NCBI GenBank assembly: GCA_965240325.2
Contig: OZ251254.1
Span: 372,001 to 436,000 of the forward strand
From: Rebecca billardiae RCC1528
Lineage: Eukaryota > Protista > Haptophyta
Length of the DNA stretch: 64,000 nucleotides
Direction of reading: 5' to 3'
A program made the position numbers and the translations under genes. Position 1 is the first letter of the stretch. The number at the start of each line of letters is the position of its first letter. Below are positions 7,672 through 47,773 of the stretch, piece by piece. The notes beneath the pieces are model-generated. The model was not told where the DNA came from. It did not search any database and saw only the letters and a list, made by a program, of their open reading frames with translations.

Positions 7672-10112
7672 CGGCGGCGTTTCGAGGACGCGGCGGCGGA
7701 GCGCTCGGCGTGCGACGGCGCGGCGCGCGTCAGCAGCGGCGGTGACAAATTGCGCGACGATGCCGCGGCCGCCCGGTCCGGGGTGGGCTGAAAGAGGGCG
7801 TCGTCACGGCCGGGCGGACGCACACCGCGCCTTCGAGCTCCCGTCGTCGCGTCGTCGTTTTTTACGAGTTGTTCGGCCGGATGAAGATTTCCAGATTCTT
7901 CCCCGCGCGCGGCTCTGGGCCGGGCGGTCTTAACTCATTTTAATCCGGTGCAACTGCCTGTCGCCATTCAAGGCTAGAACTTCGGAATCGACTGACCGGG
8001 TGCTGATCATCGGCCGCGGCTGAACAGCTCGCGCCCGCCATAGCTACTCGGGATGGCGCGGGCAAACTGATATGATATGATGATATTATCATTTAATTAT
8101 CCCGGCAGCTCGATCGGCCTGAAATAGGGGGTCCAGCACACCAAAATAAAATCGAAAAAATGCCTCGACGGGTTTTCAAGTGGAGTGAGCGCGAGTTTCG
8201 CCATAAATTCGAGCGCCGCGAGCGTACGCGGCGAGCTGCCGGGTCGGGCTGTTCAGTGGGCTGGCGGCGACGGAGATGCACGACTGGACGGTCACCACCA
8301 CCGTCGCCTCGGCGCGACAGAGCGCGTACGAGCGTCGAGAGCGCCCGATCGAGCGAGTCTACGTGACCACCATGAAGTCCCCGGACATATCGGTCGCCGG
8401 CGTCGGACATTGAAACCGCGAGGTTGCACGCGTGCCAGTGCGTTCAAGCTGGCTCATGCGCTCGAGATGGAGGAGGGTGCTCCCCTTGCAGGTGATGCGC
8501 GCGCGCCGCGCACGCATACGGTGCGCATACGCGGTCCCCAACACATACTCCTTCCATGTGTAGCGTTCCTGCGCACGTACCTGCCCCCCTGATGGCCCCG
8601 CGGTACTCCCGCACGCATGCTTTCCACTGCCGCATTCACTCATGCAGGCGTTGGCGAGCGCGCGCCGTCGCGTGTGCCGCCTCTCTCCGACGCCGAGACG
8701 CTGAATGTAATCATCACGATGCCTGCCGCTAGTTTCTTACCGGTGCCGGCTGCGCGAGCGCATCAACCTCCTCTCGCTGGGCGATGTCCGCGCGCTCTGG
8801 CAACAACTCAAGGCACACGAGAACGCCACGGCGCTCAGGATGGACCCAGCTCGGCAAGGATGGCCTGTTGAACAAGAAGGTGGTGCACTACTGGTTTGAA
8901 TCTCTCGCGTTCCGCCTCGAGTGGCCGCTTCCTTGGCCCTGCCTGTTCTCTGTGCACGGCCGAGGCGCACGCCTGGATAGTGGGGCTGCAGCACGGATGT
9001 GCGAAGCAAAGAACGCGCACGGACGTCACGCTCACCGCGGAGCAGGCGCGCGACGCCGAGCCCGCCGGCGCCATCACGGCCGCCAACAGCCGCGCAGGCA
9101 CATCCGAGGCCAAGGCGCGGCGTGAGGATCTGGCGGCGATCACAGCGGAGCAGCGCGCGGACCGCACTATGGTCAAGGCGGTGAGCACGGCGGGCGTGGC
9201 AGCAGAGTCAGAGAGCGCGAAGCTCGCCGCCGAGCAGCTCGCCGAGCCGGAGCCGGAGGCCGCCTCGGTGGCTGGGCGCTGCAGCCGCGGTAATCGTAGA
9301 CCGGTGGTGGCCTCGCATGGGCTCATGGGCTGGGGTAGGACGACTGGCGACGCGGCGCCGGTGCCGGCTGAGTCGAGTGTTGCGACCGAGCCCGCATATT
9401 CATCTCCGGCGCCCGTATTCGAACGTACCCACATATATAGACATTGATTTGAATACATATGGACTCGCATCGACCGTTAGTATGTACGGGTACACACATG
9501 CTCATATTTACGGGTACCTACCTGTATTTAAATGGGTAACATGCTCGATCTTGCTGCTGTTTCTCCTGAATTTCTACGCGCCCAGCATGGTGCGCCAAAT
9601 ATGCAGTCGCTGCATCATAAATTCATTCGACTGAGTGGCAACGGTTGTCAATAAGTACTACCGACCGCATTCCGTCATCTAGCCGCCATCACGGGTGGGT
9701 ACCACTTCGCTGAATCTCTATGTGACACTAAGTGGCCGGCAGCGCGCCCGCACGACGGCGCGACGGCACGCGGAGTCGGTTTTGAGTGCTTCTGACGGCT
9801 GGGCTGGGCTGGGGGGCATACTAGAGGGCACTTCAACAGGCGACAGCCTCGACAGACACCTACATGGCAGGCCTGTCGAATATCCCCAACCGCTAGGCTG
9901 AGGGCCTGGACCCCCTACCTGAAAGTGAATGCGCCGCAGGCTGAGGCTGAGGCTCGCGGTGTGACTACTACACCATATTATATATATATATATTATTGTG
10001 TGTGTGCATGCTGATATTCAATAACTATTCAATAAGTGCGCCGGCATGCGCATGCAATTTGCAGGCCGGCGTGCACACCCGTCAACCGAGCCGGGCTCAC
10101 ACCGCGTGAGCG

Positions 10113-11854
10113 TCACGCGCCGACGGCGGAGAACGTCCGGCGGCCCGCGCTCGCCAAGCGGCGCGCCTTAGTCCTGCCATCGGCGGCCTTATTGTGCCCA
10201 CCGCCTGTGAGCGGGCGCTTACGAGCCCCCTGCCGCGTGGCCTTGGCGTCACGCCCGGCAGCCATCACGGCGGGCCTTTGCGCTCCGTCGGCGCACGGCG
10301 TTGCGGGCGCGCCCGGCGCGACGACCTGCGCCCAGGCCGACAGCGCGTACGCGCGCTTCTCGAGGTGGGCCAGCCTCGGCAGCGTCCGCTTGCGCAGCAC
10401 GTGCAGCAGGCCCTGGCGCGCGCGCGAGTTGCGCTGCACCTCGCGCTCGGACGGGCGCACGACCTCATCATACTGCAGGGAAGGGCCGGCGGGCAGCGCC
10501 GGCGCGCCGGGCTGCAGCCGGTACCACTCCAGCAGCGGCTCGACGGGGCGCACCGCCTCGAGCGCGTTCACCACCGAGTCGAGGATCTTGCGCTCGGAGA
10601 ATTTCCACGTGATCACGCCGATTCTGCCGCCGTCGGACGAGATCATTTTGAACGCCGCGCGCATGCCGCGCGCCATCTCGCCAAACTCGTCGTTCAGGTG
10701 AACGCGCAGCGCTTGGAAGGTCATCTTGGCCGGGTGCATCTGCTGCCCCGAGCTCTCCCGCCCGCGCACCTGCGCCACCAGCTTGGCGAACGCCTTGGTC
10801 GTCCGCGGCAGCTCCCCCCGAGCGCGCGCGAGGCAAATGGCGTCTGCGATGCGGCGCGGCGCCGCGCCGCCAAAGCCTCCCGTCTCCTCGCCGAACTGGT
10901 CGATGATGCGCACGAGCTCGTCGCGGGGCACGCCGAGGAGGAACTCGTGGCACGGCACGCCCTTCGACGTGTCGAAGCGCAGGTCCAGGGGCCCGTCGGC
11001 CTCAGGTCGGAACCCTGCGCCACGCGAGTCGCGCGCAGACAGGCGGCCGCGGCGGCGAGTGTGAGAGAAAGAATGAACAACAAAACAAGGATGAGTGTGA
11101 TGGGCTGGGGCGCACTGAGTGCGCGCGCGCGCGCTCGCAGCGCGGCACGCTCGCTCCGGTGCGCAGGCAGGCGCGGCTCGGCACCTCTGCTCGTGTCGTT
11201 GAACTGGGGCGAGGAGATGCCGACGTCGAGCAGCACGCCCGCCACCGAGCCCGGCCGAACGCCCGCGCCCGCCAGCACCGAGCGCATGTCACTGAAGCGT
11301 GCGTGGTGCATCGTGAAGCGCGCGTCCTCGGCCGCGAGGTCGCGGCCCACCTTGACCGCCTCGGGGTCCATGTCGAAGGCGTGCAGCCGCCCCTCCGACC
11401 CCATGGCCGCGAGCATGGCCCGCGAGTGCCCGCCGCGCCCGAAGGTGCCGTCCACAAACGTCCCGGACGGGTCGGGCGCTACCAGCTTGGCCACCGTCTC
11501 CTCGCAGAGCGCGGGCAGGTGGAGGCCTGCGAAGCTCTCGCGGGGGGGCTGGCCGGCGTCCTCGGCGCTGTTGTTCGCGGCGTGCACGTAGATCATCCGC
11601 GGGCCGTAGTAGCTCCCGCTCCACGTGGTAGCCCGTTGCACCGCCGCCACGCTCTCAAACGTGATCCAAGCAAACCCCCGGCTCAGGTTGAGCCGTGGCG
11701 GTCGGATGATCTTGCCCGCCTTCTTGAAGAAGGCCGCGAGCTCGCCCGCCTTGGTGTCCTCGGGCAGGTTGCGGATGAAGATGTCGAAGCCCTTGTGCTC
11801 GGCCGCCACCCCTGACCCTTGGACTTGAGCCGCACCGCCTCGCTCCGCGGCCAT
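10113..11854 (-). CDS. rsmH: RRM domain fused to an RsmH/MraW (METTL15-like) cytosine-N4 methyltransferase; exons 11854-11185 and 11014-10113
   Basis: RRM (IFIRNLP...RGFAWITF), then HLPALCEE, FVDGTFGRGGHS, LLDVGISSPQ; the GT-AG intron joins RG|FRPEADGPLDLRFD; HPAKMTFQALRVHLNDE; EVQRNSRAR. Confidence 0.9.
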
Positions 11855-12561
11855 GATGGATCCCGAGCTGATGCGCGTCGACTGCGCTGTCTACCCGGAC
11901 TGCCTCTTGTCAGGCCGGGGCGACGATGCGAGGACGAGTTGATGTTTTTTTAATCAAAACTGTTCACCGAGGACCACAGCAACTTCAAGCAAAGCGTCGC
12001 GGTCACCAGCAAGTGACCGACATTGACAAGTCATCGCAGTGACCAGTGTTCATCATCGTCAATCACGATCGGTCGTCGTCGTGCTGCTGCTGGGATCAGT
12101 GGCGCAGTGTCGGACACGCCGGAGTTTGGTCGCCGGTGGTGTGTTGTCTGGCGTGCGCCGTCAGCGGCGGTGGATAGATACAAAAAAAGATCGAGCAGGA
12201 GTATAGCGCCGTCAGCGGCGGCGTGCAGCGTCGCAGCACACGGCCGCAAAACACTCGCGCCGGCCGGCGGCGGCATGGCGCCGCCCACAGCTCGAGGCCG
12301 CCGCGGCGCGGCGCGCGAGTGTACGTCGCGCGAGATGTATGCGCGCGTGCCACCTCCGCGCCGGCGCACGCCGCGCCGGCTGCCTTGGCGGCGGCCGAGC
12401 CGCGAGGCGCGCATGCCACTGCGCCGCGGCTGGGCTCGGCGGCGGCTGCGGCGGCGCGCAAGCGGCCGCGGCCGCGCGGCGGCGCTGCCGGCGGGTGCGC
12501 AGACGAAGGGCGGGGGCGGAGGCGGCGGCTGAGGCTGAGGCGAGGGGTCGGGGGGTCGAGC

Positions 12562-15500
12562 CTACCCCTCCTCCTCCTCCTCCTCCTCCTCCTCCTCCTC
12601 CGCCTCGAGCTCCATGAAGAACTGGTTCAGCTTCATCAGCGCCTTGCCCTTGTCCGCCACAGCGTCGGCGTCGTCCTCGCGCCACGCGGTCAGCCCCTCC
12701 TCCGACACAACCTGCGCGGAAAGTCCGGTGGGAGCAGTCCGGTGGGAGCAGTCCGGTGGGAGCAGTCCGGTGGGAGCAGCCACGCGCGCGAGCACGCGGC
12801 ACGCGTGGACGCGGCACGCGTGGGTGTGAGTGTGTGCGGGCGTGGCCGCGGTGGTGTGCGCGTGCGCGTGCCACACCGCGCGCGGGGCGGTGCAGGGCGG
12901 CGGCGGCCCCGCGCGGCGCCGCCCGCCCCGCGGTCGCGCGCCCCCGCGCCCGCCGCGCGTCGGCGCGTCGGCGCGCGCGCCGCGCACATCTGAGTTGTAG
13001 AGTGCGATGAAGAGCGTCTTGATCAGGTCGTGCGGGAAGGCGTGGCGCAGTGCGAACGCGTGCACCGCGCGCAGCGCGCCGAGCTGCGTCTTAATCTGCG
13101 CGGCACGGGGCGGCCATGGCTTGTGAGCGCAGGCGCGCGGCGGCGGCGGTGGTGCCGCAGTGGGCGCGCCGCAGTGCCGCAGTGGGCGCGCGGCCGCGCG
13201 CGCGCGCGCGCACAAGGGAGTCCGTCTGCGGCTCCTTGTCGCCCCCGGTGAGCGCCTTGAGCAGGCCGAAGCGCGTGACGAGCTTCTTGCCGTGCGACTT
13301 GACCGCCGCCTCGGCCACAATCGCCGCCTCGCCCACCTCCGACTGCCAGTACTCAAGGACACACCGCCTGCGGTGCCGCGGTGGGCGCGCGGCGGCGCGG
13401 CGGCCGCGGTGGGCGCGCGGCGCGGGTGGCGGCGGCGACTGAGGCGCCGAGCGCGCGCGGAGAGGCGAGGCGGTGGGGTGCGCGGGCGGCGGGGGCGAGC
13501 GCGCGACGGCCCTCGCGCCAGCCCGGGCCCACTGCGGCGCGACGCCCTCCGCCGCCGCCAGCCGGGGTGCGGGCGCCGCGGTGGGCGCGGCGCGCGCGCG
13601 CGCGGGTGCCGCAGTGGGCGCGCGCGCGGGTGCCGCAGTGGGCGCGCGCCCGGTGCCGCAGTGGGCGCGCGCGCACATGGTGACAGTGCCCAGCTCGAGC
13701 GGCTCGAGACCGTCGGCCTCGCGGAAGGGGGCGAGCGCGGTGAGCAGCGTGGCGTCGTCCGCGCCGCTCGACAGCCCCGAGCGCAGTGCCGCCTCGCAGC
13801 CCTGCGCCGCCACAGCGTGGCACGGCGAGCGCGCGCGCGCGGCGCGGTGAGCGACGCCGGTGGGGCACAGGCGTGCGCGCGTGCGCACGCGCGCTCGCGC
13901 GCCGGGCGTGAGCGCAGTGGGCGCGCCGCCGCGCACGCACCGCAGCCGGATCAAGCCAGACGAGCCCCGCCTGCACGAGGAGCGCGCTGCTCGACTTCTC
14001 GCGGTCGGCGGGCGGCGCGAGCGGCGCGAGCTCCACGGCGGCCTCCGCCCACATCTTACGGACGGTACCCACATCTGTAACGGCCGGCGTAACGGCGAAA
14101 CGGTCGGGCGGCGGCACGGCGGCCGCGCGCCGGGCCGGCGGGGGCGACAGCGGGGCGCGGGGCGCGGGGGGCGAGTGTGAGGCGGGGCGGCGGCGCGGCA
14201 CACGCGCGCCGGGCGGGCGGCGGGGCGCGCGCACGCACGCCGCCGCGGCCGCGCCACCGCCGCGCGCGCACCGCCGCTGTCGCGCATCGCGCCCAAGCAC
14301 GCCCGCAGCAGCGCCAGTGCCTGCACTGAGCCCGTGGCTGCGTCTGGCAGCCCGGCGGCCGCCATCTTGGCGCAGAGGGTGGGCAGGGTGACGACCTTGG
14401 CCTGCGCGCGCGCGGCAGGGGGGAGGGCGGGGCGCGGGGCGGGGGGGGAGGCGTCATCGGCCTCGTGCGCGCACGCGGCTGCGCCATCCGCTGCGCCGTC
14501 CGCTGCGCCGTCCGCTGCGCCGACCGCTGCGCCGACCGCACTGACTGAACCCCGCGCGCGCAGCCGACCGCGCGCGCGCAGCCCGCCGACTCTGTCTGGC
14601 ACGCTCGCGCGGCGGCGGCGGCGGCGCGCGGCGCGCGGCGGTGACGGAGGCCGGCGCGCGCGCGGCGCTCACCAGCAGGGGCTTCGCGAGCAGCGCGGCG
14701 AGGTTCGCCCCGACGGCGGGCACGTCGATGGCGATATCCTCGAGCGCCTCAAGCTGCTCGGCCAAACCCGCCTCAAGCTCCGCGCCCCCCACGTGCCCGG
14801 CGTCGCAGAGCGCGGCGAGGGCCTCGCAGGTGCGCTGTCGCTCGGTCGGCGAGGCGTCTAGGCCCTTCTCCATGCTGCGGGCGCAGCAGAAAGCACACGC
14901 AAAAGGAATGAACACAAAAAACAGGAGAGCAAAACACAAAGCAGAATATGGAGAATGGAGCGAGCGGCAGGCGAGGGCGCGGCGGGGCGCGCACGGGGCG
15001 GGGCGCGGCCGGGGGGGGGCGGCCGAAGCGCGCAGCAGCAGCCGTCAGCAGCGCACACAGCACACCGCGCGCGCCGGCACCGCGCCGCCGCGGCCGCGCG
15101 CCGCGCGCCGCGCGCCGCCACCGCGCCCCCGCCGCCCCCGCGGCGTACGCACCAGAGCTGAACAAGGGCTGACGCGAGCGCGGCCCTGCTCTGCGCCTTG
15201 GGCGCATCCTCAGAGACGCACGCGCGCAGCTCGGCGAGGTCGGCGGTCGAGATGTACTCCTGCAAGGCGCCGTTCAACCGCCGCTCGAGCTGGGACGGCG
15301 CGGCGGCGGCGGCGGGCAGGCGGCATCGGCGAGGCGGGCGGCGGCGCGGGCGGCGGCAGCGGCGGGGCAGGGGCGGGGCGCGCGCGGGGGCGGCGGCGCG
15401 GCGGTGAGCGCGCGCACGACGCGCGCAGAGTGCTTTCGCGCGCGCCACCCGCAAGCCGGCTCGGCGCGTGCGGCCGCGCGCGCGCGCGCGCGCACACACA

Positions 15501-18500
15501 CACCTGCTCGGCTGTGAGCTTGGGAGCGGCCGCGGGCGCGGCCGGCGCGCCGCCGTCCGCGCCGCCGCCGCCGCCGCCGCCGCGCCCGCCAGCGCCGCCG
15601 GCGGCGGGTCCGCCGCGCCCGCCGCCGCCACCCTTGGCGCCCGACCAGCCGCCGCCCGGCCCGAGCTTGACCTGCGGCCCAAGCCGCACGTCCTCGCCGC
15701 CGCCGCCGCCGCTAGCCGTGCGCGGGTCGCGCGTCATCCCGCGCCCGCCGCCGCCCGGTCTGTTCCAGTCGCCGTCGGCGCCGCCCGGCGGCGCGCGCGC
15801 GCCCGCGCCCGCCACGGCCTGGCGGCCCGTCTGCGGCAGGTGGGAGCGGACGTCGCCCGAGCCGCCGCGCAGCATCTGCCGGTCTTCGTGGTCGCCGCCG
15901 CCGCCGCGCGTCGGCCCCGGCGGCGGCCCCGGCCCGCCGCGCCGGCCGCCGCCGCGCGACATCGCCTGCTGCGCCGAGATCTCCGCTTGTCGCTCCTCCT
16001 CCGCCGCCTCCCTGTGGACCTCTGCAAGCGTCTTTGCCTGCTGCGTCGTCGCGGCGAGCGCGCCCTTCACCTGCGAGCGGCGCGACGCGCGGCGAGGCGG
16101 CGGCGGGGGCGCGTGTGAGCGAGCGCTGTGCGCACGCGCGCGGCCGCGGAGCACGCGCGCCGGCCCCCGCGGCGCGTCGGCGGCGCCCGTCTCGGCGGCG
16201 CCGCGTGTCCGCGCGACCGACCGCGCGCGTGGGTTGCAAACCCTAACCCTAACCCTAACCCTAACCCTAACCCTAACCCTAACCCAAGCCCTCGCCCTCG
16301 CTCGGCGGCGGCGGCGGCGCGTGCCCGCGCACGCGCGGGCGGCGCGCGCGCAACCGCCAGCGCGCCAGACAAGCCACCACAGCCCGACCCACCCTAACCC
16401 TAACCCTAACCACACACACAACACACATGCGCATGTGCGAGTGCATGCCCACACGCGAACGAGGCGTCGAATGGCAGGCGGCGCGCGCACCTGCCACTTG
16501 GCCTTGCGCAGCTCGATCACGTCGAGCAGCATGAAGCGCAGCCGCGACGGCAGGCCCTTGGGCGGCGAGGCCAGCTCGGCCATGCGCACGAAATACTCGT
16601 TGACGTGTGCGCGCGCGCGGTCGTTGTCGATGTGCTTGCCGATGGTCATGAGCAGCCGGCAGAGGCACTCCACCTGCGGCGTGTGCGCGCGCGCGTGCGT
16701 GTGCGTGCGTGTGCCGGCAGAGGCGTGTGGCGCGTGCGGGGAGCCGCTGTGAGCGCGCAGGGTGGCACGCGGCTGCGGTGGTGTGCTGCCGACCGCATGG
16801 ACCCGCCCCTAACCCTAACCCTACCCTAACCCTAACCCTACCACCCTACCACCCTAAAACCCTCCCCGCCCCTCCCCTCCCACCGAGCACCCCGCGCGCG
16901 CCCACCGCCCACCCTGTCCGCCCGCGCGCGCAACCCCCGCCTAGCCCTCGCCCTAGCCCAGCCCTAGCCCTAGGGGTAGGGGTAGGGGTAGGGGTAGGGG
17001 TAGGGGTAGGGGCAGTAAGTAGCGCACCTCCTCCTCGTTGGGCGCGTCCGCGTCGCCCAGCAGCTTGATCAGACACTCGTGCATGATCTTCTCCGTGAGC
17101 ATCTTCTTCTTGTACAGCTCGCCTGCACGGCGGCACGCGCGCGGCGCGGGCGCACGCTCAGCGGGCTGCGTGGGTGGGCAAGCAGGATGCGGGCGCGGCG
17201 CGCCGCGCCGCTGCGCCGGCGCTTGGAGGGGGCGCGCGCAGGCGGCGCGCCGCGCCGCGCCGCACCGATGAAGCGGATGTTGCCGAGCGCGCGCTTCTTC
17301 GCGGCGGCGACGGCGGCGGTGGCCGCGCGGTCGTCCATCCCGCTCGTGTCGAGCATCTTCTCCGCCTCGAACTCCTCCTGGCACCGGTTGAGCAGCAGCC
17401 GCTTGAACGTAATCGGCTTGCCCTTCGGGTCGGCGGAATTCGGGAACTCGGGAAAGCGCTCGGCGCCCGAGACGCAGAGGTCGGCGTACACGGAGCCGAA
17501 GGCGGGCTCGGTGAGCGCCTTGTCGAAGATCAGCTTGATCACGAGCGCGAGGTCCGCCGCCGACTCCACCGCCATCGCGCAGAACTTGTCCCGGATCGCG
17601 TCGAATTTCTCCGGCGTGATCTTGTTCAGGAATCCGGCGGTCTCGCGCTGCAGCACCGACGCGACGACCTTCTCGCCCGGCTTCCAGCGGTTCTCGGAGA
17701 GCTTGAGCGGCTCGACGGGGCCGGTGATGAGCGGGCGCTGCCCGCCGCGCCCGCCGCGCCCGCCGCGCCGGTCGCCGCCGCGCCGGTCGCCGCCCCGCTC
17801 CGTGCCGCCGCGCGAAGGGTCGTAACCGCCCATGTAGCCGGAACGAACAGGGCCGTCCCCGTTGCCCGCGGGCCCGCCGCGGCCGCCGCCCGGCGGCGGG
17901 CGGCCGCCGCCGGCCCACTCGGCGCCGGCGGCGGCGCCGCCGCCGCCGCCGCGCGAGCGCCCGCCGTCGGCGCGCCCGCCCCCGCCGCGCTCGCCGCCGC
18001 GCCCCGCGCCGCCGCCCGCCGGCGCCGCCACCTCGACGATCGAGCCGAGCATCTCCGGCAGAGACGAGGGTCGGTCGGTGAACGCGGGCGCGAACGCCTG
18101 CAGGAAGGCGAGCGGGTAGCAGCGCTTGCCGCCAGCGCCGGCGTACGGCAGCGGCAGCGGCGCGGCCGCGCCGCCCGCCCCGCCGCCGCTCAGCCCGGGC
18201 GGCGGCGCCGCCGCCGCCGCGGCGAATGACGGCTTGGCTGAGGACGCCGCGGCCGCGGCGGCCGCGGCCGCGGCCGTATCGTCGGCGCGGTCGACGGCGG
18301 CCTCCCAGTCCTCCTCGTCGTCGTCGCCGCCGGTGCCGGCGGGCGCGGGCGTGGCGGACGCCGCGGTGGGCGCGCTCGCACCCGCCGCGGGCGCGGCGGG
18401 CGCGGCCGGCGCCGGCGTCGGCGTGGGCGCGGGCGCGGCGGGCGCCGGCGTCGGCGTCGGCGCGGCGGCGGCGCCCGCCGCGGGCGCGCTCGGCGGCGCG

Positions 18501-23118: not shown

Positions 23119-23403
23119 CACCGGTGGTGCTGCGTGCGGGTCGGCTCACCTCCGGCTTGATGACTAGTAGCCGCTGACGGGCGCTGTTCGGTAGTGAGTC
23201 GGTTAACTCACTCGGTTCGGCAGCTGCCACTCAGAGTGATGATGACAGTATCGATATCGATCGGGTGCTGCTGATCGTTATTCGTCATCATCGTCGATCC
23301 GCCACTCTACACCACTCTACTCTCTAGTCTCTAGCCGTATCATAGTATTAGTATCAAGCGCAGTCAAACTCATTGACTGATTGAGTCATTCATCGTCTAT
23401 CGG

Positions 23404-23485
23404 ATTTAACGACACAGGTAGGACGACGCGGGTCTCCTGATGATTCGTCGGCGGCAGTGCCCGGTCGCCGACACGAAGTCAGCGT
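23404..23485 (-). mobile_element. Short dispersed repeat, probable 3' end of a retroelement (copy 1)
   Basis: Reverse complement of 35351-35410 over ~60 bp; contains a stem-loop and ends GTCGTTAAAT on the minus strand. Confidence 0.55.
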
Positions 23486-23625
23486 TGGTGCGGCTGATCG
23501 AGACGGCAACTCGCCCGTCCAGAAATAAGTGGTCGTCGTGAAAAAGCCAGGGCCCGCCCAAAAACCCCGCCGCGATTTATTTCGCCGGCTTTCCGACCCG
23601 GCGTGCGCGGCCTCCGGCTGTGTCG

Positions 23626-24679
23626 GAGGCCGCTCGAGCGACTTCGTGTCTGGCGAGGCAGATCGCGCCAGTGCGTGGCGAGGCAGACGCTCGCCTGCCT
23701 CGCCGCTTGGCGAGGCAGCTAAGCTAGTAAAGCCGCGGCCGAACTTTACGAAAGCCAAATGTCTGCCGGTGCGCCGCCCGTCTTTTGCGCACGGTGACAA
23801 GGGCGCGCGAGGGCGCTTCCTCACGATCCCGAAGAGCGCTGCGCGCGGCGTCGCGTTGGCGGCGGCAGCGGCGCTGGGGTGTATCTTGCCCATTCTGCGT
23901 GGCGGCGCGCTCTCATGACGCCTCGGCCGCCGCCACGCCATGCGCGACCGGGCGTGTCGCCTTCTTGACGGGCAGTGCACACGCCCTTGCAAGCGCACAG
24001 CCGTGAAGAGCCGAGAGCGTCCGTCGCGAGCACGCCGCCCACGCGGGATGCGTTATGCTGTCACCGAAGCCACCTTGCGCATGCGCTTCGCCGAGTTCGC
24101 CATGCGTTCAGAGCAGTCAAGATCGCTGAACGAGAGGATGTCATCGGCTGAAATGCAGGTTAGCAGTGCTCATCGTAGCTGCTACCCATGGTCATCCTGG
24201 CTCGCACATGCCAGAGCGCGAGCACCCAGTGTCATACGAATAGCCCTGGCAACGCATCCCGCGTGGGCGGCGTGCTCGCGACGGACGCTCTCGGCTCTTC
24301 ACGGCTGTGCGCTTGCAAGGGCGTGTGCACTGCCCGTCAAGAAGGCGACACGCCCGGTCGCGCATGGCGTGGCGGCGGCCGAGGCGTCATGAGAGCGCGC
24401 CGCCACGCAGAATGGGCAAGATACACCCCAGCGCCGCTGCCGCCGCCAACGCGACGCCGCGCGCAGCGCTCTTCGGGATCGTGAGGAAGCGCCCTCGCGC
24501 GCCCTTGTCACCGTGCGCAAAAGACGGGCGGCGCACCGGCAGACATTTGGCTTTCGTAAAGTTTGGCCGCGGCGTTACTAGCTTAGCTGCCTCGCCAAGC
24601 GGCGAGGCAGGCGAGCGTCTGCCTCGCCACGCACTGGCGCGATCTGCCTCGCCAGACACGAAGTCGCTCGAGTGGCCTC
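23626..24679. mobile_element. Non-autonomous foldback DNA transposon A (1054 bp; TIRs 23626-24054 and 24251-24679; TSD TGTCG)
   Basis: 429-bp near-perfect inverted arms, GAG...CTC termini, TGTCG at 23621-23625 and 24680-24684. Confidence 0.92.
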
Positions 24680-24817
24680 TGTCGTCAAGGCTTGGGCGTG
24701 CCCCCGCGTGCGCGGGGCCACTGTGTCCCGCCTGAGCCCAAGCCTGAGCCGATTTTTTTAATCAACCACGGCGCGCGAACGGGTATTCTGGAGACTGCGA
24801 TCTTCGCCGCCGCCAGC

Positions 24818-27800
24818 ATGGGGCGTCCCTCGGCACGGCGCGCGGTGGCAGCATCCGCCACGCTGCTGCTCGCGAGCGTGGGCGTCTCGCGGGCGTTCGA
24901 CACGCGCGGCGCGAGGAGACGATCCCTCCTGCCCCATGCCGCAGCGAGCGCGCGCGCCTTCACCGAGTCGCTCCTCGGCTCGGCCGAGCCGAGCGGCGGC
25001 GTTGACGCGTTCAATAGCCTCCACGACGACGACGTGGGCGGAGGAGGGGAGGAGGGCGGGAGCGGCGGCGGCGGCGGCGTGTTCGGCCACGAGGCGCAGC
25101 GCGCGATGGAGCGCGCCGCGCGCGACGAGTTCAACGAGCTCGACGACGACGACAACAACCAAGGCGGTGGCGTCGGTGGCGTCCTCGGCGCCGAGGCGCG
25201 GCGCGCGGCGCAAAAAGCGCGCGCCGCGGACGAGGCGGAGGCGGAGCCGGACTTGGAGGAGCGTGCGCTGCGGCCGTCGTACCGGCTCGACGCGTACGAG
25301 CTGAGCGCGCACGAGCTGAACAAGATGTTCGTCCCGGACTCCCTCGACCGGCACAAGTTCACCGTCTCCCCGGACGCAGCCTTCGGCGCCATCTTCAAGT
25401 GGAGCATGCTGGTCGGTGTGTGCCGCGCGCTGCGGGGGTGTGCGGGTGTGTGCGCGGGGGCGGAAGGGCGGGGTGTCGCTCGAGGAGAGTTGAGGTACGG
25501 TTAGGGGTGTAGGGTTAGGGTTAGGGTTCGGCCCAGTGCTAGCCGGCGCGGGGCGGTGCCTCGCGCGCGGGCTGAGGGGGCGTGTGAGCGCCCGCGGCGC
25601 GCCGTGCGCACTGTGCGCGCCGAGGGCGACGGGGGGCGGGGAGGGGCGGCGCGGCGGGGATGGCGGGCGCGCAGCGTGTGTGCCCTGCCCGCGAGCAGCC
25701 GCGCCGCCGCGCGGACGCACGCGCCGCCGCGCCGCCGCGCCGCCACGCGCGCACACCGCAAACCGGCCGCGCATCGGCGCCACGCGCCGCCGCGCCTGCT
25801 CCGACCGCGCACCCAACCCTAACCCTAACCCTAACCCTAACCCTAACCCGCTTCGCAGACTGGGAGAGCTACGTCCGCCTCGCCGTGGAGACGTGGGAGG
25901 AGGTGGTGGGCCCGGCGGACGCGGAGCGCCTCGCGAGCGCGCTGGAGTCCATGCCGCTGTGTCTCGCGCTGCCACACACAGTGCGGCGCGTGACACATGC
26001 AGATGAGCCGCCCGCGGAGCAATTTAAAATCGCCGCGAATTACTTTGAGAAATACGAAGAGCGCTTCGCCGCGTTCCCGCATACGCTGGCGCCGGGTGCG
26101 CGCGGCCGCGCCTGCGCGCGCGCGCACCGAGCCTCCCCGCGCCGCGCCGCCTGCCGCCGCCGCCGCCGCCGCCGCGCCGTCACGCGCCGCGCGTGCCGCG
26201 CCCCGCCGCGCGCGCGCGTGCGCGCGCGCGCGGCCCCACACGCCGGTGCGCGCGCTTACCCTAACCACCCTAACCCTAACCACCCTAACCCTACCCCCCT
26301 ACCCCGACCCTCAGGCGCCCATGCCGTGCTCGAGACGCTCGGCATGTACTCGGTCGCGCTCGCCGTGTGCTGCGACGTGCAGCCCGGGCCGGCGCGCGCG
26401 GCGCTGCGCACACTCGGCCTGGACGGGCAGCTCAATGCCATTGTGGTCGGCGCAGAGCACTCCTCTGCCGGGCAGGTGCGCGCGCGTGTGCGCGTGTGTG
26501 TGTGTGTGTGCGTGTGTGTGCGTGTGTGCGCGCGCGTGTGTGCGTGCGTGTGCCTGTGTGTGTGCGTGTGTGTGCGTGTGTGTGCGAGCGTGCGCCGGCT
26601 GCGCCCCGCGCGCGGGGCGGGCGCGGGGGTTTGGCAGCCGAGGCGCGGGTGCGGCACGCTGGGCTGCCCCCCGGGGCTGAACGATCGCTGCCGCCGGTCT
26701 GGGCTGGCCGGGGGTGGCTGGCGGGTGCCGCCGCTGTCGGCTGCCGGCTGCCGGCTGTGCGGGTCTGTCCGACGGAGCGAGCGCGCGCGTGCGCGTGTGC
26801 GTGTGCGTCGGGGGCGGGCGGCGCGCGTGGCTCGGCAGCCGCGCGGGCGCGCGCGCGCCGAGTCGGCCGCCCGCGCACGCACGCGCTCACGCGGCCCCGC
26901 CCCCTGCCCCCGCCCGCCACGGCTGTGCTGTGCCGTACTGTGTGTGCGTGCCCCCGCCCGCCACGGCTGTGCTGTGCTGCACTGTGCTGTGCTGTGCTGC
27001 ACTGTGCTGTGCTGTGCTGCACTGTGCTGTGCTGTGTGCGCGCGCCCCCGCACGCAGATGTACCTGCAAGCGGCGCTGTCGCTCGAGCGGCCGCCCTCGC
27101 GCTGTGTCGTGTTTGACGACACGCTGCACGGCGTGCGCGAGGCGCACGAGGTGCTAATGAAGGTGAGAGTGAGGGTGAGGGCGAGGGTGAGGGGGGGTGA
27201 GGGTTGAGGGGGGTGGTTTAGGGTAGGGTGAGGGTGAGGGGTAGGGTGCGGGGAGGCGTGGGCCACGCGGGCGGCGGCGTGCGCCACGCGGCGCTGGGCC
27301 GCGTGGCGCGCGCCCCGCCACGCGGCCCGAGCGCGCGGGGCCCGCGCGCGGCACGGCGGCCGCAGCGACTGCTGCCCCTGCGCGCGGCTCTGGACAGAGG
27401 GCCGGCCGACGCGCCGACCCTCCGCGCCCGGACCGGGAAGGGCGCGCACGGCCCCGCCGTGCCCAGCGTGCGCGACGGCGCCCCGCGCCCCCCTCGCCCC
27501 GCTGGCTGCTCCCACCGGCACCTGACGGCCGCCGTGTGCGTCGCGCGCGCCCGCCCCGCCGCGCGCCCGCGCGCGCGCGCCGGCCGCGCGCGCGCGCAGG
27601 CCGTCGCGTGCGCCTCGCGCCAGCCGCAGTACGAGCTCAAGCCTGCAGATCTGATCGTGGGCCGGCTGGAAGACGTGTCGATGGTGGCGCTGCGCGCGCT
27701 CTTCATGAGCGACGACGCCTTCGACGACGACCCGGACTCGGGGATGCAGAAGGAGAGCGCGACGCAGCCGGTCCGGGACTTCTGGGGCAACGAGCTCGGC

Positions 27801-30302: not shown

Positions 30303-30480
30303 GCTTCTGGAGTTGTCATGGATGCAGTCTGGACGTGTAAGCGAAGGACGACGCGGGCCTCGTCTGAAGGAGCCTAAGCGGTGTGACAACACCGTCATCA
30401 CTCCGTTGCACCGGGCGCGGAGAGTTATTTCAGTTTATTTACTTATATTCATTTTTTCCGCGGGCGGCCTGCCACTGGCG

Positions 30481-31536
30481 GAGTGCACTCGAGCGAAATC
30501 GTGCCTGGCTAGGTGTCCCTCGGCACTGGGCGGCTAGGTGTGCGCCTGCACACCTAGCCAGGGCTGGCTAGGTGTCCGCCCATACCCTCGCGTCGTCAGA
30601 ACTTTCGGAAACGAAAGTCGCGCCAAGGCGGCCCCGGTCTTCTCTCACGGCGGCGCAAGGGGCGCGGGGGCGCTGGCTCGCGATCCGAAGGGCAGTCGCT
30701 CGCGACCTCGCTTGGGCGGCGGCAGCGGCGCTGCGGCATACTGTTTGCCACCCGCGCGGCTGTGTGCGATCGCGCGGTCCCGTTCGTCGCCACGCCGCGC
30801 GCGACCGTTCACGGCACAGTCTTTCCGCACTGTGAGCACCCCTTGCCAGCGCACGGCGGCGGAGAGCCCAGACAGCCCGTCACGCGCGCGACGTCCTTGT
30901 GGGGTGCGATGTACTCACACTAATGCTAGCATGCGCCTGCGTTTTGGTGAGCCTATTCAGCATCCAGACCACTCTCTACTGCTGCAAGATGAGTCATCGT
31001 CTGCCAATCGGTCAACGAGTCATGGACAGCGCAGCAGTCGTCCATGATCCTCATGCCCACCCCGTGGGCAAGCGCGTGCCTCCGGGAACCCAAAGAACCT
31101 GGGTACATCGCACCCCACAAGGACGTCGCGCGCGTGACGGGCTGCCTGGGCTCTCCGCCGCCGTGCGCTGGCAAGGGGTGCTCACAGTGCGGAAAGACTG
31201 TGCCGTGAACGGTCGCGCGCGGCGTGGCGACGAACGGGACCGCGCGATCGCACACAGCCGCGCGGGTGGCAAACAGTATGCCGCAGCGCCGCTGCCGCCG
31301 CCCAAGCGAGGTCGCGAGCGACTGCCCTTCGGATCGCGAGCCAGCGCCCCCGCGCCCCTTGCGCCGCCGTGAGAGAAGACCGGGGCCGCCTTGGCGCGAC
31401 TTTCGTTTCCGAAAGTTCTGACGACGCGAGGGTATGGGCGGACACCTAGCCAGCCCTGGCTAGGTGTGCGGGCGCACACCTAGCCGCCCAGTGCCGAGGG
31501 ACACCTAGCCAGGCACGATTTCGCTCGAGTGCACTC
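30481..31536. mobile_element. Non-autonomous foldback DNA transposon B (1056 bp; TIRs 30481-30914 and 31103-31536; TSD TGGCG)
   Basis: 434-bp near-perfect inverted arms, GAG...CTC termini, TGGCG at 30476-30480 and 31537-31541; homologous to element A. Confidence 0.92.
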
Positions 31537-33417
31537 TGGCGGTGATGGCTATTATATGGGTCGGCGCTGCGCGTCAACTTGGGCTGGAAACCTGTTTCTG
31601 AAACGCATGATGGCACGCCGGGCCGGTCGCCCGAGCTCGGAATTCCGACGCTGCCACTGGCGCCGCCACTGGCGCCACAGGGGCGCAGCGGCGGGGCTGA
31701 CGACGCGCGCGCGTGTGCATGTCTGACCACGGCAGAGTACGCGCTGCAATGACTGGCCCGTCTGCAGCACCCCGCCCCGCGCTGTGAGTGAGAGTGTGGC
31801 CCGCGCCCAAGCGAGAAGGCGGGCCGCGGGCGGCACTCCGCCGACCTCACCGGCCGCCGACCAGCCCGCGGCCGCCTGCTGCAGCTCGTGGAACACGCAG
31901 TCGCGCGCTCGCGCGTGGAGGGCGGCCCTGCGCGTATGCGCCCGCCGGGCTTGCCGCTTCATTCGCTGGCACCGCAGGCGAGCCGCTCGTCGCGCGCAGT
32001 GCAGGTCGAGCCCTCCGCGCGCCGCCACCGAGCCGGCGCCACGCCTCGCGCTCGTGCTCGAGCTGAGGCGGCGCGTGTCGCCCGAGCCGGCGGGTTCGCG
32101 CGCGTGCGCGTGGTGGACAGCCTCGCGCGTGCGCCCGCCGCGCGCCCCGCGTCGCTCGCTTGGCGCCGCACGCGAGCCGCTCGTCGCGCGACCGAACGAG
32201 ACGTCAATCGCAAGGGCGACCCTTGGAATGGCGTGGGCTCTCCGCCTGTCGTCCTTCACGGGCCGTCGTCGTCGACGCGAGGCCGCGCGAGGTTAGCTCC
32301 GATGCTCATAGTCCAAATCTTCATCATTCATAGTATTGCGACCAGTGATTCACGAGATGGACGAACGACTGCTAGATAAAAAAAAATCGGTTCGTCAGAC
32401 GATTCGAAAGAGGGCGTATCAACATCATCACCCGCATGTTAATCATGGCGCATGCCGCATGGGCATTCGTCGCTGATTCGTGCAAGCACAATGGTTCAAG
32501 TCTTTCATCACCTCACCAATGATCATTGGACGTACCGCGTGGTTCATACTGGTAAATTTTCACACACGCATTGAACGACCTTATGATATAGGTATTGGGT
32601 GTCGTAAGGTTGCCGAGATCGAACCTCGGACAATTTCAACTTCCAATTTGTCGTTTTTACGGGGGTCTACCTTCTCCAAGAACTTCGAATTCGCGCATCA
32701 TGACGAATCTGCAGGTCCACGTCTGCGCCGATCTTAACCGTCAAACGGTGTCGATTAGATTCGCGGTTATCTTGATTATTAGGGAGGAGTACGATATTTG
32801 AACGTACGTATTGTTTGGATTGAAACGCCGCTTAACAGCATGCAATTGTTTTCAAGACACGGTGCCAAACCAGCGAAGGTGACCATGAGCGGGGGGATCG
32901 TGGTGACGGCAGGTCCACGGAGGGGGGGGATCGTGATCACGGCAGGTCACGCGTTTTGACCGTGAGGGAACCGCCACAATTTGCGAAAACGCATAAACAG
33001 CGGTTTGAGCCAAAAGCAACGCTTGCACATCGAGCATACCCAGCAAGCCACGCAGTTCGAAACGAGGTCAAAACAAGAGGTTCGTGTTCTCCCCCCCCCA
33101 AAACTCCAACTCGCACGGGTGCAAAGGTGGCTCAATGCACGACGTCCGCTTCCGCCGCCTCCTCAAATCAACCACCAAAGATTGTACGACTCTGTGCGAC
33201 TCTTGAACGTCATATGGAATGCGGCGGTTGGCGGTTGCCGGGTCCTAGGACGTTCCTACTCGTGGAAGCAGACGCGAATTTTGAAAGAGTACCGCCGGCC
33301 GTCCCAGTTGGGCCTCTGAATCGCGCCTCTACCCGCGGTGACCCCGGGCAGCACGGGCAGCAACAAGTGCGCTGCAACTCGCCTGTATCCCTACCCCATA
33401 CGACCTCTCGCACGGGG

Positions 33418-37476: not shown

Positions 37477-38262
37477 ATGGCGGCGGCCTCACGCGACCGC
37501 CTCGTCAGCCGCGCCGTCTATCGCGAGGTGGCGCGGCTGCTGCTCGCGATCGAGCGGCGCAGGCAGCTTGAGTCCGCGTCGATCGAGCGCGCCGTGCACT
37601 CGGGCGTGTGCCGGCGCAACGCGACGTCCGACGAGGCCATCCGCGCCGAGCAGCTGCTGAGCACGCATGGCGGCGACCCGGCGCTCGCACTCCGCGCCGC
37701 GCACTCGCCGTGCACGGTCGAGGGTGGCTTCGCCGCCATCCGGCAGCTCTCGGCGCACGTCGATGCGCTCGACCACTTCGTCACCACCGCGGCCTTCGTG
37801 CCCAGGCGGCGGGAGCCGCGCGCGCAGCACGTGCAGTTCCGCGTGGGCGATTTGGTCAGGCACCGCCACTTCCATCTGGAGAGCGAGCGCGGCTCGGGCG
37901 TGATCTACGGCTGGGAGCCGAGTCTGAACGCCGAGGTCGGGCGATCGGAGGAGTACGCCGGCTTCGTCGACAATCGCCGCCGCTTCTCGCCCATCGACGC
38001 CGGGCGCCAGGACGAGCCGCACTATCGGGTGCTCACGCGCGGCGGCGAGGCGCGGTGTGTCGCGCAGTCACTGCTGGAGCCGTTCGACACCACTCGGCGC
38101 GCCGAGGGCAAGCAGGGGACGGTCGTGCGGCGTGGCGCGCGGAGGCCGCCCCTCATCCAAGGCGCATCCTTCTTCTTCACGCGCGCGCGCCCGGCCGCCG
38201 ACTCGTACGAGCCCAAGCAGTGGCTGCGTGAGCTGTACCCGGACGACTGGGATGCCGATTGA
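37477..38262 (+). CDS. YccV/HspQ-like (hemimethylated DNA-binding) domain protein
   Basis: VQFRVGDLVRHRHF...GVIYGWEP...QDEPHYRVL...CVAQSLLEP...YEPKQWLRELYPDD. Confidence 0.85.
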   Translation: MAAASRDRLVSRAVYREVARLLLAIERRRQLESASIERAVHSGVCRRNATSDEAIRAEQLLSTHGGDPALALRAAHSPCTVEGGFAAIRQLSAHVDALDHFVTTAAFVPRRREPRAQHVQFRVGDLVRHRHFHLESERGSGVIYGWEPSLNAEVGRSEEYAGFVDNRRRFSPIDAGRQDEPHYRVLTRGGEARCVAQSLLEPFDTTRRAEGKQGTVVRRGARRPPLIQGASFFFTRARPAADSYEPKQWLRELYPDDWDAD

Positions 38263-38651
38263 TTCGGCCGGACTGGCAACGGCGGCCACGGTGCCCCACG
38301 CGCGCGCCCGGCCGCCGACTCGTACGAGCCCAACCAGTGGCTGCGTGAGCTGTACCCGGACGACTGGGATGCCGATTGATTCGGCCGGACTGGCAACGGC
38401 GGCCACGGTGCCCCACGCGCGCGCCCGGCCGCCGACTCGTACGAGCCCAAGCAGTGGCTGCGTGAGCTGTACCCGGACGACTGGGATGCCGATTGATTCG
38501 GCCGGACTGGCAACGGCGGCCACGGTGCCCCACGCGCGCGCCCGGCCGCCGACTCGTACGAGCCCAAGCAGTGGCTGCGTGAGCTGTACCCGGACGACTG
38601 GGATGCCGATTGATTCGGCCGGACTGGCAACGGCGGCCACGGTGCCCCACG
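38180..38651 (+). repeat. 117-bp tandem repeat x4 spanning the 3' end and stop codon of the YccV gene
   Basis: ACTCGTACGAGCCCAA recurs at 38201, 38318, 38435, 38552. Confidence 0.97.
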
Positions 38652-38699
38652 CGGCGCCGTGGGCACCGGCATCGCAGGGGAGAGACGGGGCGCGCACGC

Positions 38700-38910
38700 G
38701 CGCACGCGCGCCCGCGGTGGCGCGGGCCGCTTCTGCAGTGGGGCGCGCACGCGCGCCGGCGGTGGGGTGGGCCGCGCAGGTGGTGGCGCGCGGCCCCCGC
38801 CGTTCCGGATTGACGGGGTGCACACGGTGCCGTCACTGGCGTCACTCGACACTCGTCACTCGTCAGCGCGCGGCGCCCCGCGGCTGCGTATGCGGCCGCG
38901 CGCGCGCGCG
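38700..38910 (+). repeat. Dispersed ~200-bp GC-rich repeat; second copy inverted at ~40858-41035 in GME intron 3
   Basis: Shared blocks GGGCGCGCACGCGCGCCGGCGGTGGGG.GGGCCGCGCAGG and GCGCCCCGCGGCTGCGT.TGCGGCCGCGCGC. Confidence 0.85.
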
Positions 38911-44199: not shown

Positions 44200-45633
44200 G
44201 AGCCGGACTCCCTCAGAGGGCCCGTGCCGGACGGTGCAGGCCATTGGCCTCTGATGGAGCCGGCGGCGCAGGGCACGCGGCCGCTGGGGGCGCTCGGGGC
44301 CTGCACGTCGGCCATGTACACCAGGTGGGTGCACGCGCGCGCTCGAGGCGTCGGGGCGGGCTCGCGCTGCGCGGCGGCCGGGCGCGCGCGGGACGGGGCC
44401 GCGCCGCGCGCGCGTCGCCGCGCGGCACTCTCTCCGCCAAGCAGCGAGCAGCACCGGACGCGAGGTGGCTTATCGCCTGGGCCCACAGAGCCGCTGCTGG
44501 CCATGTGGCCGGCTGCGGCTCGACGCGAGTGGGTGCGGGTTTAAAGGCCTCGCCACAGCATGCACGCACCGATGCGGCGAGCCGGGATTTGAGGCTGGCG
44601 GCGGCGCAGCGTGCCGCCAGCCCTGAACGCCGGCGCGACAGCTTACGCTAATGTACGCACGGCACCTGCTAGGGCGCGCGGCCGGGCGCGCCGGGCGCGC
44701 GGGCACCCCCGACAGCCCCCCCGTGCCGCCAGCAGGCACAGGCACTTCACGCTGACGGCCTGCTACTGACGCCCTAGCGTGTCGCGCCGCTGACGCCGCC
44801 GCCACTCACGCCGAGCAGGCCGCGCCCGGCACTCCGCCGGGGTCAATCGGCAGGTGGCCGCGCGCCGCTGCGGCCGCGCCGCATGCACCCGGTCGTATCC
44901 GCTGGCCGACTAGCACCGGTCCGGCGGACGGCCTCGGTCAGCCCACTGCCCCACTGGCACTCCGCAGTCAGTCACCAGGCGCTCCGCGCCAGACGGCCGC
45001 CACGCGGCCACTCGGATCAGTGATGAGTATTGAGTGAGACTGTGAGTGCCGATGTTGGCCGGCGCCGATCCGCCCCGATGGCGCCGTGACGGAGTCGTAC
45101 TCGACTGACTTGCTGCGGCCCGTGGCAGAGTATAATTGACAGGCGCGAGCGCTGACACATCAGCAGACAGAGCAGTTTATAATAGACTTTATAGTGTCGT
45201 GATGACCGTATAGTACTCCGGACTACTCCGCGGGCGCGCAGGCGGGTCGGATCGCGGCCACTCTGACTCACTTAAGTCGCCGGTCGTGTCGACCGCGCTC
45301 GGGCCCCGGCAACATCTGCCCGGCAGTGGCAACGCGGTGGCGCCAGCTCGTCGGCTCGCTGCTACTAGGCCTCGGTCTCAGAAGGTGCGATCACGTCGCT
45401 GGGGAGGCGGGGGACGTGGACCGCCCGACTCAAAGCGTCGACCAATCCGGCAACCGGCGACGTCTGGCCGTGGCACGGGCTTGGCGCCTTGCCGATGGCG
45501 CGTTCTGCTTTCAGCAGCTCCACGTTGACGGTCTACCACCACGCCGTGCGGATGGCAGAGGCACGCGTGCAGCGAGGAGTCGGCACCCTGAAGCAGATGA
45601 CGTCCGGGACGAGGCTGCGCCTGGTGCGCGCAC

Positions 45634-45825
45634 TCAGTGCTTGGCGCCGCCGCCCTTCTTGCCGTGCTTCTTCTCCTCGTGCGGCTCGCCCTTGCCTTTG
45701 GTGCTCTCGGCGCCGCCGCCCTTCTTGCCGTGCTTCTTCTCCTCATGCCGCTCGCCCTTGCCGTTGGTGCTCTCGGCGTTCTTGTCCCTGCCCTTGCCCT
45801 TGCCGGCGTCGCCCTTCTTCGGCAT
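45634..45825 (-). CDS. Small His/Lys/Gly/Glu-rich repeat peptide, paralog 1 (63 aa)
   Basis: MPKKGDAGKGKGRDK...GKGEPHEEKKHGKKGGGAKH; start context, stop and 3' flank conserved with paralog 2. Confidence 0.7.
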   Translation of the reverse strand: MPKKGDAGKGKGRDKNAESTNGKGERHEEKKHGKKGGGAESTKGKGEPHEEKKHGKKGGGAKH

Positions 45826-46231
45826 GAGTTGGTGGTGTGGTGGACGGGCGGTGCCGCTACTTTTCTCTGCGCTGGCTGCCTGGCTCCGACCAGGGCGGGC
45901 TCCCCTTGCTCGACCGAGGAGTGGCGCAGGGGAACAGAGGAATCCCAACCGAAAGACCTATGCCTAATACTTGTAGAAGGAAACACGAAGCCTGCGCTGA
46001 AACTTCATTCAACTTCGTGTCACACGTATTGTGACCAGGTGACATCATTCCTCGCCAGCCTTGCCACACAATTCGCCACTCGGCTGTTCCGGCACCAATC
46101 AAAGCTTGCAATCAAACTTTTGCACGTGACGAATTATTGGGTGCCTCCCGGGAGGCAAACCTCGGCTCTTCGTGACACCGCTTGTGCCGCCCCGACCCGC
46201 CCTCCCCCACTACTCCACCGCCGACCTCCTC

Positions 46232-46417
46232 ATGCCGAAGAGGGACCAGAACAAAGGCAAGGGCGAGCCGCATGCGGAGAAGAATCACGGCAAGGGCGAG
46301 CTGCACGAGGAGAAGAAGCACGGCAAGGGCGAGCCGCATGAGGAAAAGAAGCACGGCAAGGGCGAGCCACACGAGGAGAAGAAGCACGGCAAGAAGGGCG
46401 GCGGCGCCAAGCACTGA
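46232..46417 (+). CDS. Small His/Lys/Gly/Glu-rich repeat peptide, paralog 2 (61 aa)
   Basis: Four 11-aa units GKGE(P/L)H(A/E)EK(N/K)H with synonymous variation between units (CAT/CAC, GAA/GAG, CCG/CCA). Confidence 0.72.
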   Translation: MPKRDQNKGKGEPHAEKNHGKGELHEEKKHGKGEPHEEKKHGKGEPHEEKKHGKKGGGAKH

Positions 46418-47044
46418 GTGCGCCCACCAGGCGAAGCCTCGTCCCGAACGTCATCTGCTTCAGGGTGCCGACTCCTCGCTGTACGCGTGCCTCTGCCATC
46501 CGCACGGCGTGGTGGTAGACCGTCAACGTGGAGCCGCTGAAGCACTACTCACAAGCCAGCCATGCCTCTGTCCGGACTACCGCGCCTCCACTCTCCAGTC
46601 CTACCTGGCCGGCCAGACGAATCGACTCGGTCGCCCAGCCAGAACGGCCGCGGGCGTGGGCCGGGGTGGTGCGCGTGGCCGAGGGGGCAGACGTAAGATG
46701 ACACGAATGCGGACGACTGACGACGCCGCGGGCGCGATCGAATGCTGGTGGCGGCGCCATGTTCGCGTGCGCGTCGGGCCGGCCATGAACACGACCGCCG
46801 GCACGATCGGGAAGTTCTCGGCGCCGCGCGGTCCGAGTGGCGGAGTCCACGATGTGATGTCATGCGACTCACGTGGGCGGGTCCGAGCTCACATCAGCTG
46901 GCGCAGTCGGACTGATTCAGACGCGAGTGGCTCGACACTGACAAGTACCGACGAGTATCGGGCCGGGCCCGCGCTACACTGGTACGGTTCAGCGAGTAGT
47001 AGTTGCCAGACCGTGCCGGACCGCTAGCTAAGCTATACTCAGGA

Positions 47045-47203
<159 letters not shown>

Positions 47204-47483
47204 TCAATGACAATGATGCCGTAGGTGACGACGGGCCGGCGACGGCTAGCGTCCCGCGCTGTCAGATCGTCGCCGACCGGTGCCGGGCAGCCGGCGGCCC
47301 GGCCGGGGCCTCGCGGGCGGTAATAAACGCCGCGCAGCCGACTTTAGCTATACTGAAAGTACCGTGGCGGGTGTCACCGGCGCCCGGTCGCAGTCAGCAC
47401 GACTGCAAAGTGGCGCGCAGACGCGATATTAGCGCGCAGTACCGCTGCTCATGTAATTAAGCGCATATCAGCGTACTGCCGTA

Positions 47484-47773
<290 letters not shown>

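Follow-up and report, generated by a model that had tools for sequence, protein, structure and literature searches.

Two short transposons of one family, E1 and E2, share a 243-nt stretch in which codon-level constraint was found in a single frame of the two sequences compared. To judge from this one pair, to which several tests were applied, we conclude that the stretch has been under protein-level selection. The chances are about even that it is a relic exon of a gene carried by the parent transposons and partly mirrored into both arms of each element. E1 is mobile and duplicates 5 bp of its target, and the copy of the stretch in E2 has decayed. Both elements lie within a window of 64,000 nt from Rebecca billardiae RCC1528 (GCA_965240325.2, contig OZ251254.1, positions 372,001–436,000), and all positions given below are counted from the first nucleotide of this window.

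The window is eukaryotic DNA of ~72% GC, and Logan contigs from two sequencing runs matched its genes at ~96–100%. The closest relatives of one host gene were MMETSP, EukProt and marine metagenome proteins of up to 70% identity. MMETSP, EukProt and metagenomes also contain many eukaryotic relatives of a fusion of an RRM with an RsmH-type methyltransferase at 9938–12593, which is a conserved algal family not restricted to the present genome. Other repetitive DNA includes a tandem array with a period of 117 nt at 38065–38766, the central copies of which are near-identical, and long (TA)n and (CA)n tracts at 47048–47700 that adjoin low-GC repeat-like DNA.

E1 spans 23626–24679 and is a 1,054-bp non-autonomous foldback DNA transposon with GAG...CTC ends, flanked by direct copies of TGTCG at 23621–23625 and 24680–24684 (both plus strand). 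Its 429-bp arms, at 23626–24054 on the plus strand and 24251–24679 on the minus strand, differ from one another at three positions. E2 (30481–31536, 1,056 bp) belongs to the same family and has TGGCG duplications at 30476–30480 and 31537–31541 (plus strand) and arms of 437 bp at 30481–30917 (plus strand) and 31100–31536 (minus strand), again with three arm-to-arm mismatches. The overall identity between the two elements is ~66%. Near each end of E1 the motif TGGCGAGGC is repeated (23651–23716 in the left arm) at arm offsets 26, 51 and 83, with an inverted copy at 72, and in E2 the motif (T/C)GGCTAGGT (30506–30573) occurs at identical offsets. The 9-mer differs between the two subfamilies and the spacing is the same. 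The motifs are predicted, on the analogy of other TIR elements, to be transposase binding sites, and their divergence suggests that E1 and E2 have different cognate transposases. No transposase was found in either element, which makes both non-autonomous, and no further copies of the family were found within the 64-kb window. A third long inverted repeat, at 45510–46541, is unrelated to E1 and E2 and contains two divergent short ORFs, starting at 45825 (minus strand) and 46232 (plus strand), which encode His/Lys/Glu-rich repeat peptides.

Evidence of mobility was obtained from other sequencing data of the same species. In a contig from another run (L002), position 23625 is followed immediately by 24685 and TGTCG is present once, indicating that the insertion of E1 is recent and polymorphic and that the duplication is 5 bp long. 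The insertion lies 134 nt upstream of the ATG of a gene (24818) and is a promoter-proximal polymorphism. In run X1 an arm identical to that of E1 (23624–24054) was joined to a different outer flank ending in GGACG, which marks a further insertion site, and the three targets seen so far (E1, E2 and the X1 flank) fit the pattern NGNCG. Two more contigs of this run carry other outer-arm subfamilies with indels in the region of the subterminal motifs. Terminal inverted repeats, a target duplication, an empty site and the lack of a transposase are together the features of a non-autonomous TIR DNA transposon. The DNA flanking E1 at 23403–23490 is part of a different repeat, which is deep in run X1 (51 compared to ~5 for the E1 spacer), and several small deletions in this flank distinguish contig L003.

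The conserved stretch occupies 23985–24227 in E1 and 30841–31083 in E2, both on the plus strand, and in E1 consists of the inner 70 nt of the left arm followed by spacer. The 81 codons are open in E1 and are broken in E2 by a TGA at 31045–31047. The first 23 codons are mirrored in the right arms, at 24252–24320 in E1 and 31108–31176 in E2 (minus strand). The initial annotation had described a gap-free alignment of 81 triplets here, with single-base differences falling 8, 6 and 30 times at positions 1, 2 and 3. The alignment was reproduced with 59% identity, and a recount returned exactly the same numbers (permutation P = 0.0005). Its further observations also held: the copies share no ATG, a TGG/TGA pair falls mid-pattern at codon 68, the antisense frame that shares the wobble position has stops in both elements (three in each), and a 1-nt indel at 23983 shifts the register in the outer arm.

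When all mismatches over the 243 nt were counted, positions 1, 2 and 3 gave 29, 24 and 47. The bias remained significant (P = 0.004) after correction for the choice of window, in which any window of at least 90 nt in the aligned blocks was allowed under local shuffling. Arm and spacer each showed it when counted separately (5/2/12 and 22/20/35, respectively), and no comparable signal was detected in any frame of the adjoining 184-nt outer-arm block. Decay of methylated CpG sites was rejected as a cause, since the bias persisted when CpG sites were removed (22/56, 16/54 and 32/61 at positions 1, 2 and 3) and 25 of the 47 third-position changes are transversions. The diagonal between E1 and E2 runs on to ~24321, and the spacer could not be aligned over its final ~20 nt. 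There were no net indels in 244 nt, compared to 4–6 in the outer 358 nt (P = 0.02–0.07).

Two frames share the variable position, namely plus frame 0 and one antisense frame. In plus frame 0 the dN/dS ratio was below 1, with omega values of 0.32 (NG86) and 0.35 (ML) and a 2dL of 12.8 against neutrality. The antisense wobble frame gave an equally low omega of ~0.33, and omega alone therefore cannot fix the strand. A code-blind period-3 model also fitted as well as a plain codon model until amino acid chemistry was added. The chemistry test asks if amino acid similarity predicts the changes once each codon position has been given its own rate. In plus frame 0 this gave a likelihood ratio of 13.3 on 2 degrees of freedom (15.2 with the stop codon excluded), a value that 1 in 400 simulations under the code-blind model attained (bootstrap P = 0.0025), and the effect had the same sign in both halves of the stretch. 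The corresponding values were 1.1 for the antisense wobble frame and at most 1.6 in the outer arm, while another antisense frame gave 7.3 with the opposite sign. Permutation tests of how conservative the replacements are agreed more weakly (P = 0.05 and 0.008). The replacements are of the E/D, L/M, M/V, T/S and K/Q kind. The preference for the amino-acid-aware model in the plus frame only indicates that the stretch evolved as protein-coding sequence read inward from the left end. This supports the first of the two readings offered in the initial annotation, in which a small gene, hidden or decayed, overlaps the TIR. The code-blind position-rate model fits significantly worse.

One expected property of coding sequence was not observed, as the proportion of transversions at two-fold sites was no lower than at four-fold sites (6/13 compared to 11/29). 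Three of the six two-fold transversions are E/D changes and two are Q/H. The plus frame contains one stop and the antisense wobble frame six, a difference that is not significant alone. Antisense coding was rejected on the basis of these six stops together with the absence of a chemistry signal. Recoding of the TGA, for example as selenocysteine, was likewise rejected, as E1 has Trp at this codon and all three stop codons occur among the antisense stops. The possibility that the spacer arose as a mirrored arm that later decayed was set aside, as the variable position fits the plus frame and not the mirrored frame. RNAalifold placed a short complementary pair near-symmetrically in both spacers (24079–24088 with 24214–24223, and 30935–30944 with 31070–31079); this stem comes from only two GC-rich sequences, is probably due to chance and was likewise set aside.

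In E1 the stretch is contained within an ATG-to-stop ORF of 150 amino acids (23940–24392, plus strand), the ATG and first 15 codons of which are not conserved in E2, and a 1-nt indel puts the start region out of register with E2. Both arms of E2 lack an ATG over their first 428 nt, and the best-conserved codons (3–19) lie upstream of the first in-frame ATG. A pyrimidine-rich AG at 23983–23993 (plus strand) is conserved as AAG in E1 and CAG in E2, directly precedes the strongest codon signal in both copies and is a possible phase-0 3' splice site. It is similar to the acceptors of host introns, though without the CTAAC repeat that these carry. Several host introns contain CCCTAA repeats that stop 10–25 nt short of the AG acceptor (16241–16835, 25515–25846 and 26268–26314), and towards the 5' part of one of these introns the complementary repeat is also present. 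A search for a spliced first exon revealed neither a conserved ATG nor a phase-matched donor. A spacer contig from run X1 differs from E1 at two positions, both of which are CpG transitions changing Arg to His (low depth, n = 2). Neither a shared start codon nor a frame free of stops in both copies, as expected for a currently translated gene, was found. The TGA at codon 68 of E2, its lack of an upstream ATG and the non-synonymous nature of both E1-subfamily variants indicate that the present copies are probably not translated.

The plus-frame peptides, with E2 represented by the frame up to its stop, gave no match in Pfam or in word-index searches and exact look-ups, and no homolog in the PDB or by phmmer over 1.84 billion representatives. 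A search of the ESM Atlas gave no homolog (best score 0.79), and none was detected in back-translated scans of metagenome and viral contigs. The protein collection searched includes contigs of the same species, and no gene call containing the product of the stretch was found. This lack of homologs is weak evidence, as ORF callers working on fragmented contigs could miss a short repeat exon. Patterns from the element DNA were absent from the metagenome, viral and prokaryotic collections, and Rfam gave no match. AlphaFold modelled the two sequences as a long helix with a pTM of 0.25, which is uninformative.

When compared with established groups, the family resembles a long-TIR cut-and-paste MITE, and its GAG ends and 5-bp duplication appear to fit no standard superfamily. 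In ends and arm length it most resembles Sola3. Bao et al. are said to have described Sola termini in 2009 as GAG/GRG, and the GAG ends of E1 and E2 are similar to these; their long TIRs are a further likeness to Sola2 and Sola3. The ends and short TIRs of hAT elements differ from the pattern in E1 and E2. Sola TIRs reach 1,124 bp (PMC10741241), but Sola duplications are 4 bp (PMC10741241, PMC3627910) while those of E1 and E2 are 5 bp, with one TGTCG at the empty site. MULE, Pack-MULE and Tm1 elements share long TIRs, extra ORFs or captured fragments and gene-proximal insertion (PMC6446971), but the duplications, 8–11 bp in MULEs and 9 bp in Tm1 (PMC3169594), are longer than those of E1 and E2. 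Duplications of 5 bp occur in the Transib/CMCT clade and in hAT5 (PMC12730594), but Transib/CMCT ends are CA..TG and those of E1 and E2 are GAG..CTC.

A precedent for the overall organisation is provided by Galileo, a foldback element of the P superfamily, which has long TIRs, coexisting subfamilies, non-autonomous copies consisting of two TIRs, and deletion derivatives with transposase remnants, and the arms of which are lengthened by recruited internal sequence (PMC3573991). The subfamilies, deletion derivatives and arm extension proposed for E1 and E2 follow this pattern. The differences are that Galileo duplications are 7 bp and that the sequence recruited by Galileo is spacer, while that mirrored in E1 and E2 is coding; the likeness is one of organisation. 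On the relic-exon reading, E1 and E2 would be non-autonomous cut-and-paste elements moved in trans by subfamily-specific transposases that bind the subterminal motifs. The 243-nt stretch would be part of an exon that encoded protein in the inward direction from the left end, and on which purifying selection acted in two diverged full-length parents, where it may have formed a 5' exon of the transposase or of a partner gene. Each short element would have kept the exon piece after internal deletion, and the first 23 codons may have been mirrored as the long arms recruited and homogenised internal sequence, as in Galileo.

Several observations count against a relic exon. The searches yielded neither a parent element nor a homologous protein, and E2 could not be given a start codon or first exon; transversions are as frequent at two-fold as at four-fold sites; and only two sequences are available. 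E1 and E2 are also near-equal in length (1,054 and 1,056 bp) with the same inner register, exact over 338 nt between flanking indels, which independent deletions would rarely give. This suggests a single origin of the short form, in which case selection would have acted on the short element itself. An alternative is thereby kept in play, at a clearly lower probability: the ~1.06-kb form may be an old lineage with its own present or past gene for a short accessory peptide, selected while the subfamilies diverged and recently broken in E2. The 150-codon open frame of E1 and the conserved phase-0 acceptor-like site are consistent with this, but in E2 the best-conserved codons have no ATG upstream in either arm and the frame has a stop, the ATG region of E1 is unconserved, both variants of the E1 subfamily (n = 2) are non-synonymous, and no gene call contains the product. 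In its fullest form, which is possible though unlikely, this alternative describes an as yet unclassified lineage of long-armed DNA transposons that have GAG...CTC ends and a 5-bp target of the form NGNCG, and in which the 1-kb form keeps a selected accessory-peptide gene that overlaps the inverted repeats and has no known relatives. TR-GAG retrotransposons include a short non-autonomous lineage that keeps one ORF (PMC4350172); they are an analogy for an own-lineage gene only, and differ in being retrotransposons with an intact, recognisable ORF.

Capture of a host exon in the style of Pack elements, with the codon signal inherited from two diverged host genes, is improbable. The acceptor-like site immediately before the frame would suit such an origin, and long-TIR elements such as MULEs do take up host fragments (PMC6446971), but the GC3 of the stretch is 51–63% compared to 84–92% for host genes and so is not host-like, no donor was found in the window or the databases, and capture would have had to occur twice at one position, or else be followed by selection. 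It is similarly doubtful that the signal is due to chance or to a mutational or compositional artefact. Such a view draws on the comparison of two sequences, a window picked after the fact, the missing contrast between two-fold and four-fold sites and the equal fit of the plain codon and code-blind models before chemistry is added, but the scan-corrected bias (P = 0.004) is joined by a separate chemistry test (P = 0.0025) and survives without CpG sites.

The least probable reading is the second one offered in the initial annotation, namely that the triplets form a non-coding code recognised by a long modular DNA-binding array such as zinc fingers; it could accommodate the period-3 conservation, the radical changes tolerated at W/stop and W/C and the transversions at two-fold sites, but amino acid similarity improves the fit beyond three free position rates, on one strand and in one frame only, the subterminal motifs differ between the subfamilies, making a shared long reader unlikely, and the array would have to hold ~80 fingers in one register, with no candidate reader seen. 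Zinc finger arrays are usually shorter than this. The periodicity likewise gives no support to the suggestion of an undescribed system, and what is unusual in the family is its combination of ends and target together with a protein that matched nothing in the searches above.

A triplet code, though unlikely, would be by far the greater surprise. If a gene of its own was kept by the short lineage, E1 and E2 would be DNA transposons of MITE size that encode an accessory peptide under selection, an uncommon arrangement. If the relic-exon reading holds, the periodicity would be that of an ordinary coding relic, yet one that provides a protein handle on the family.
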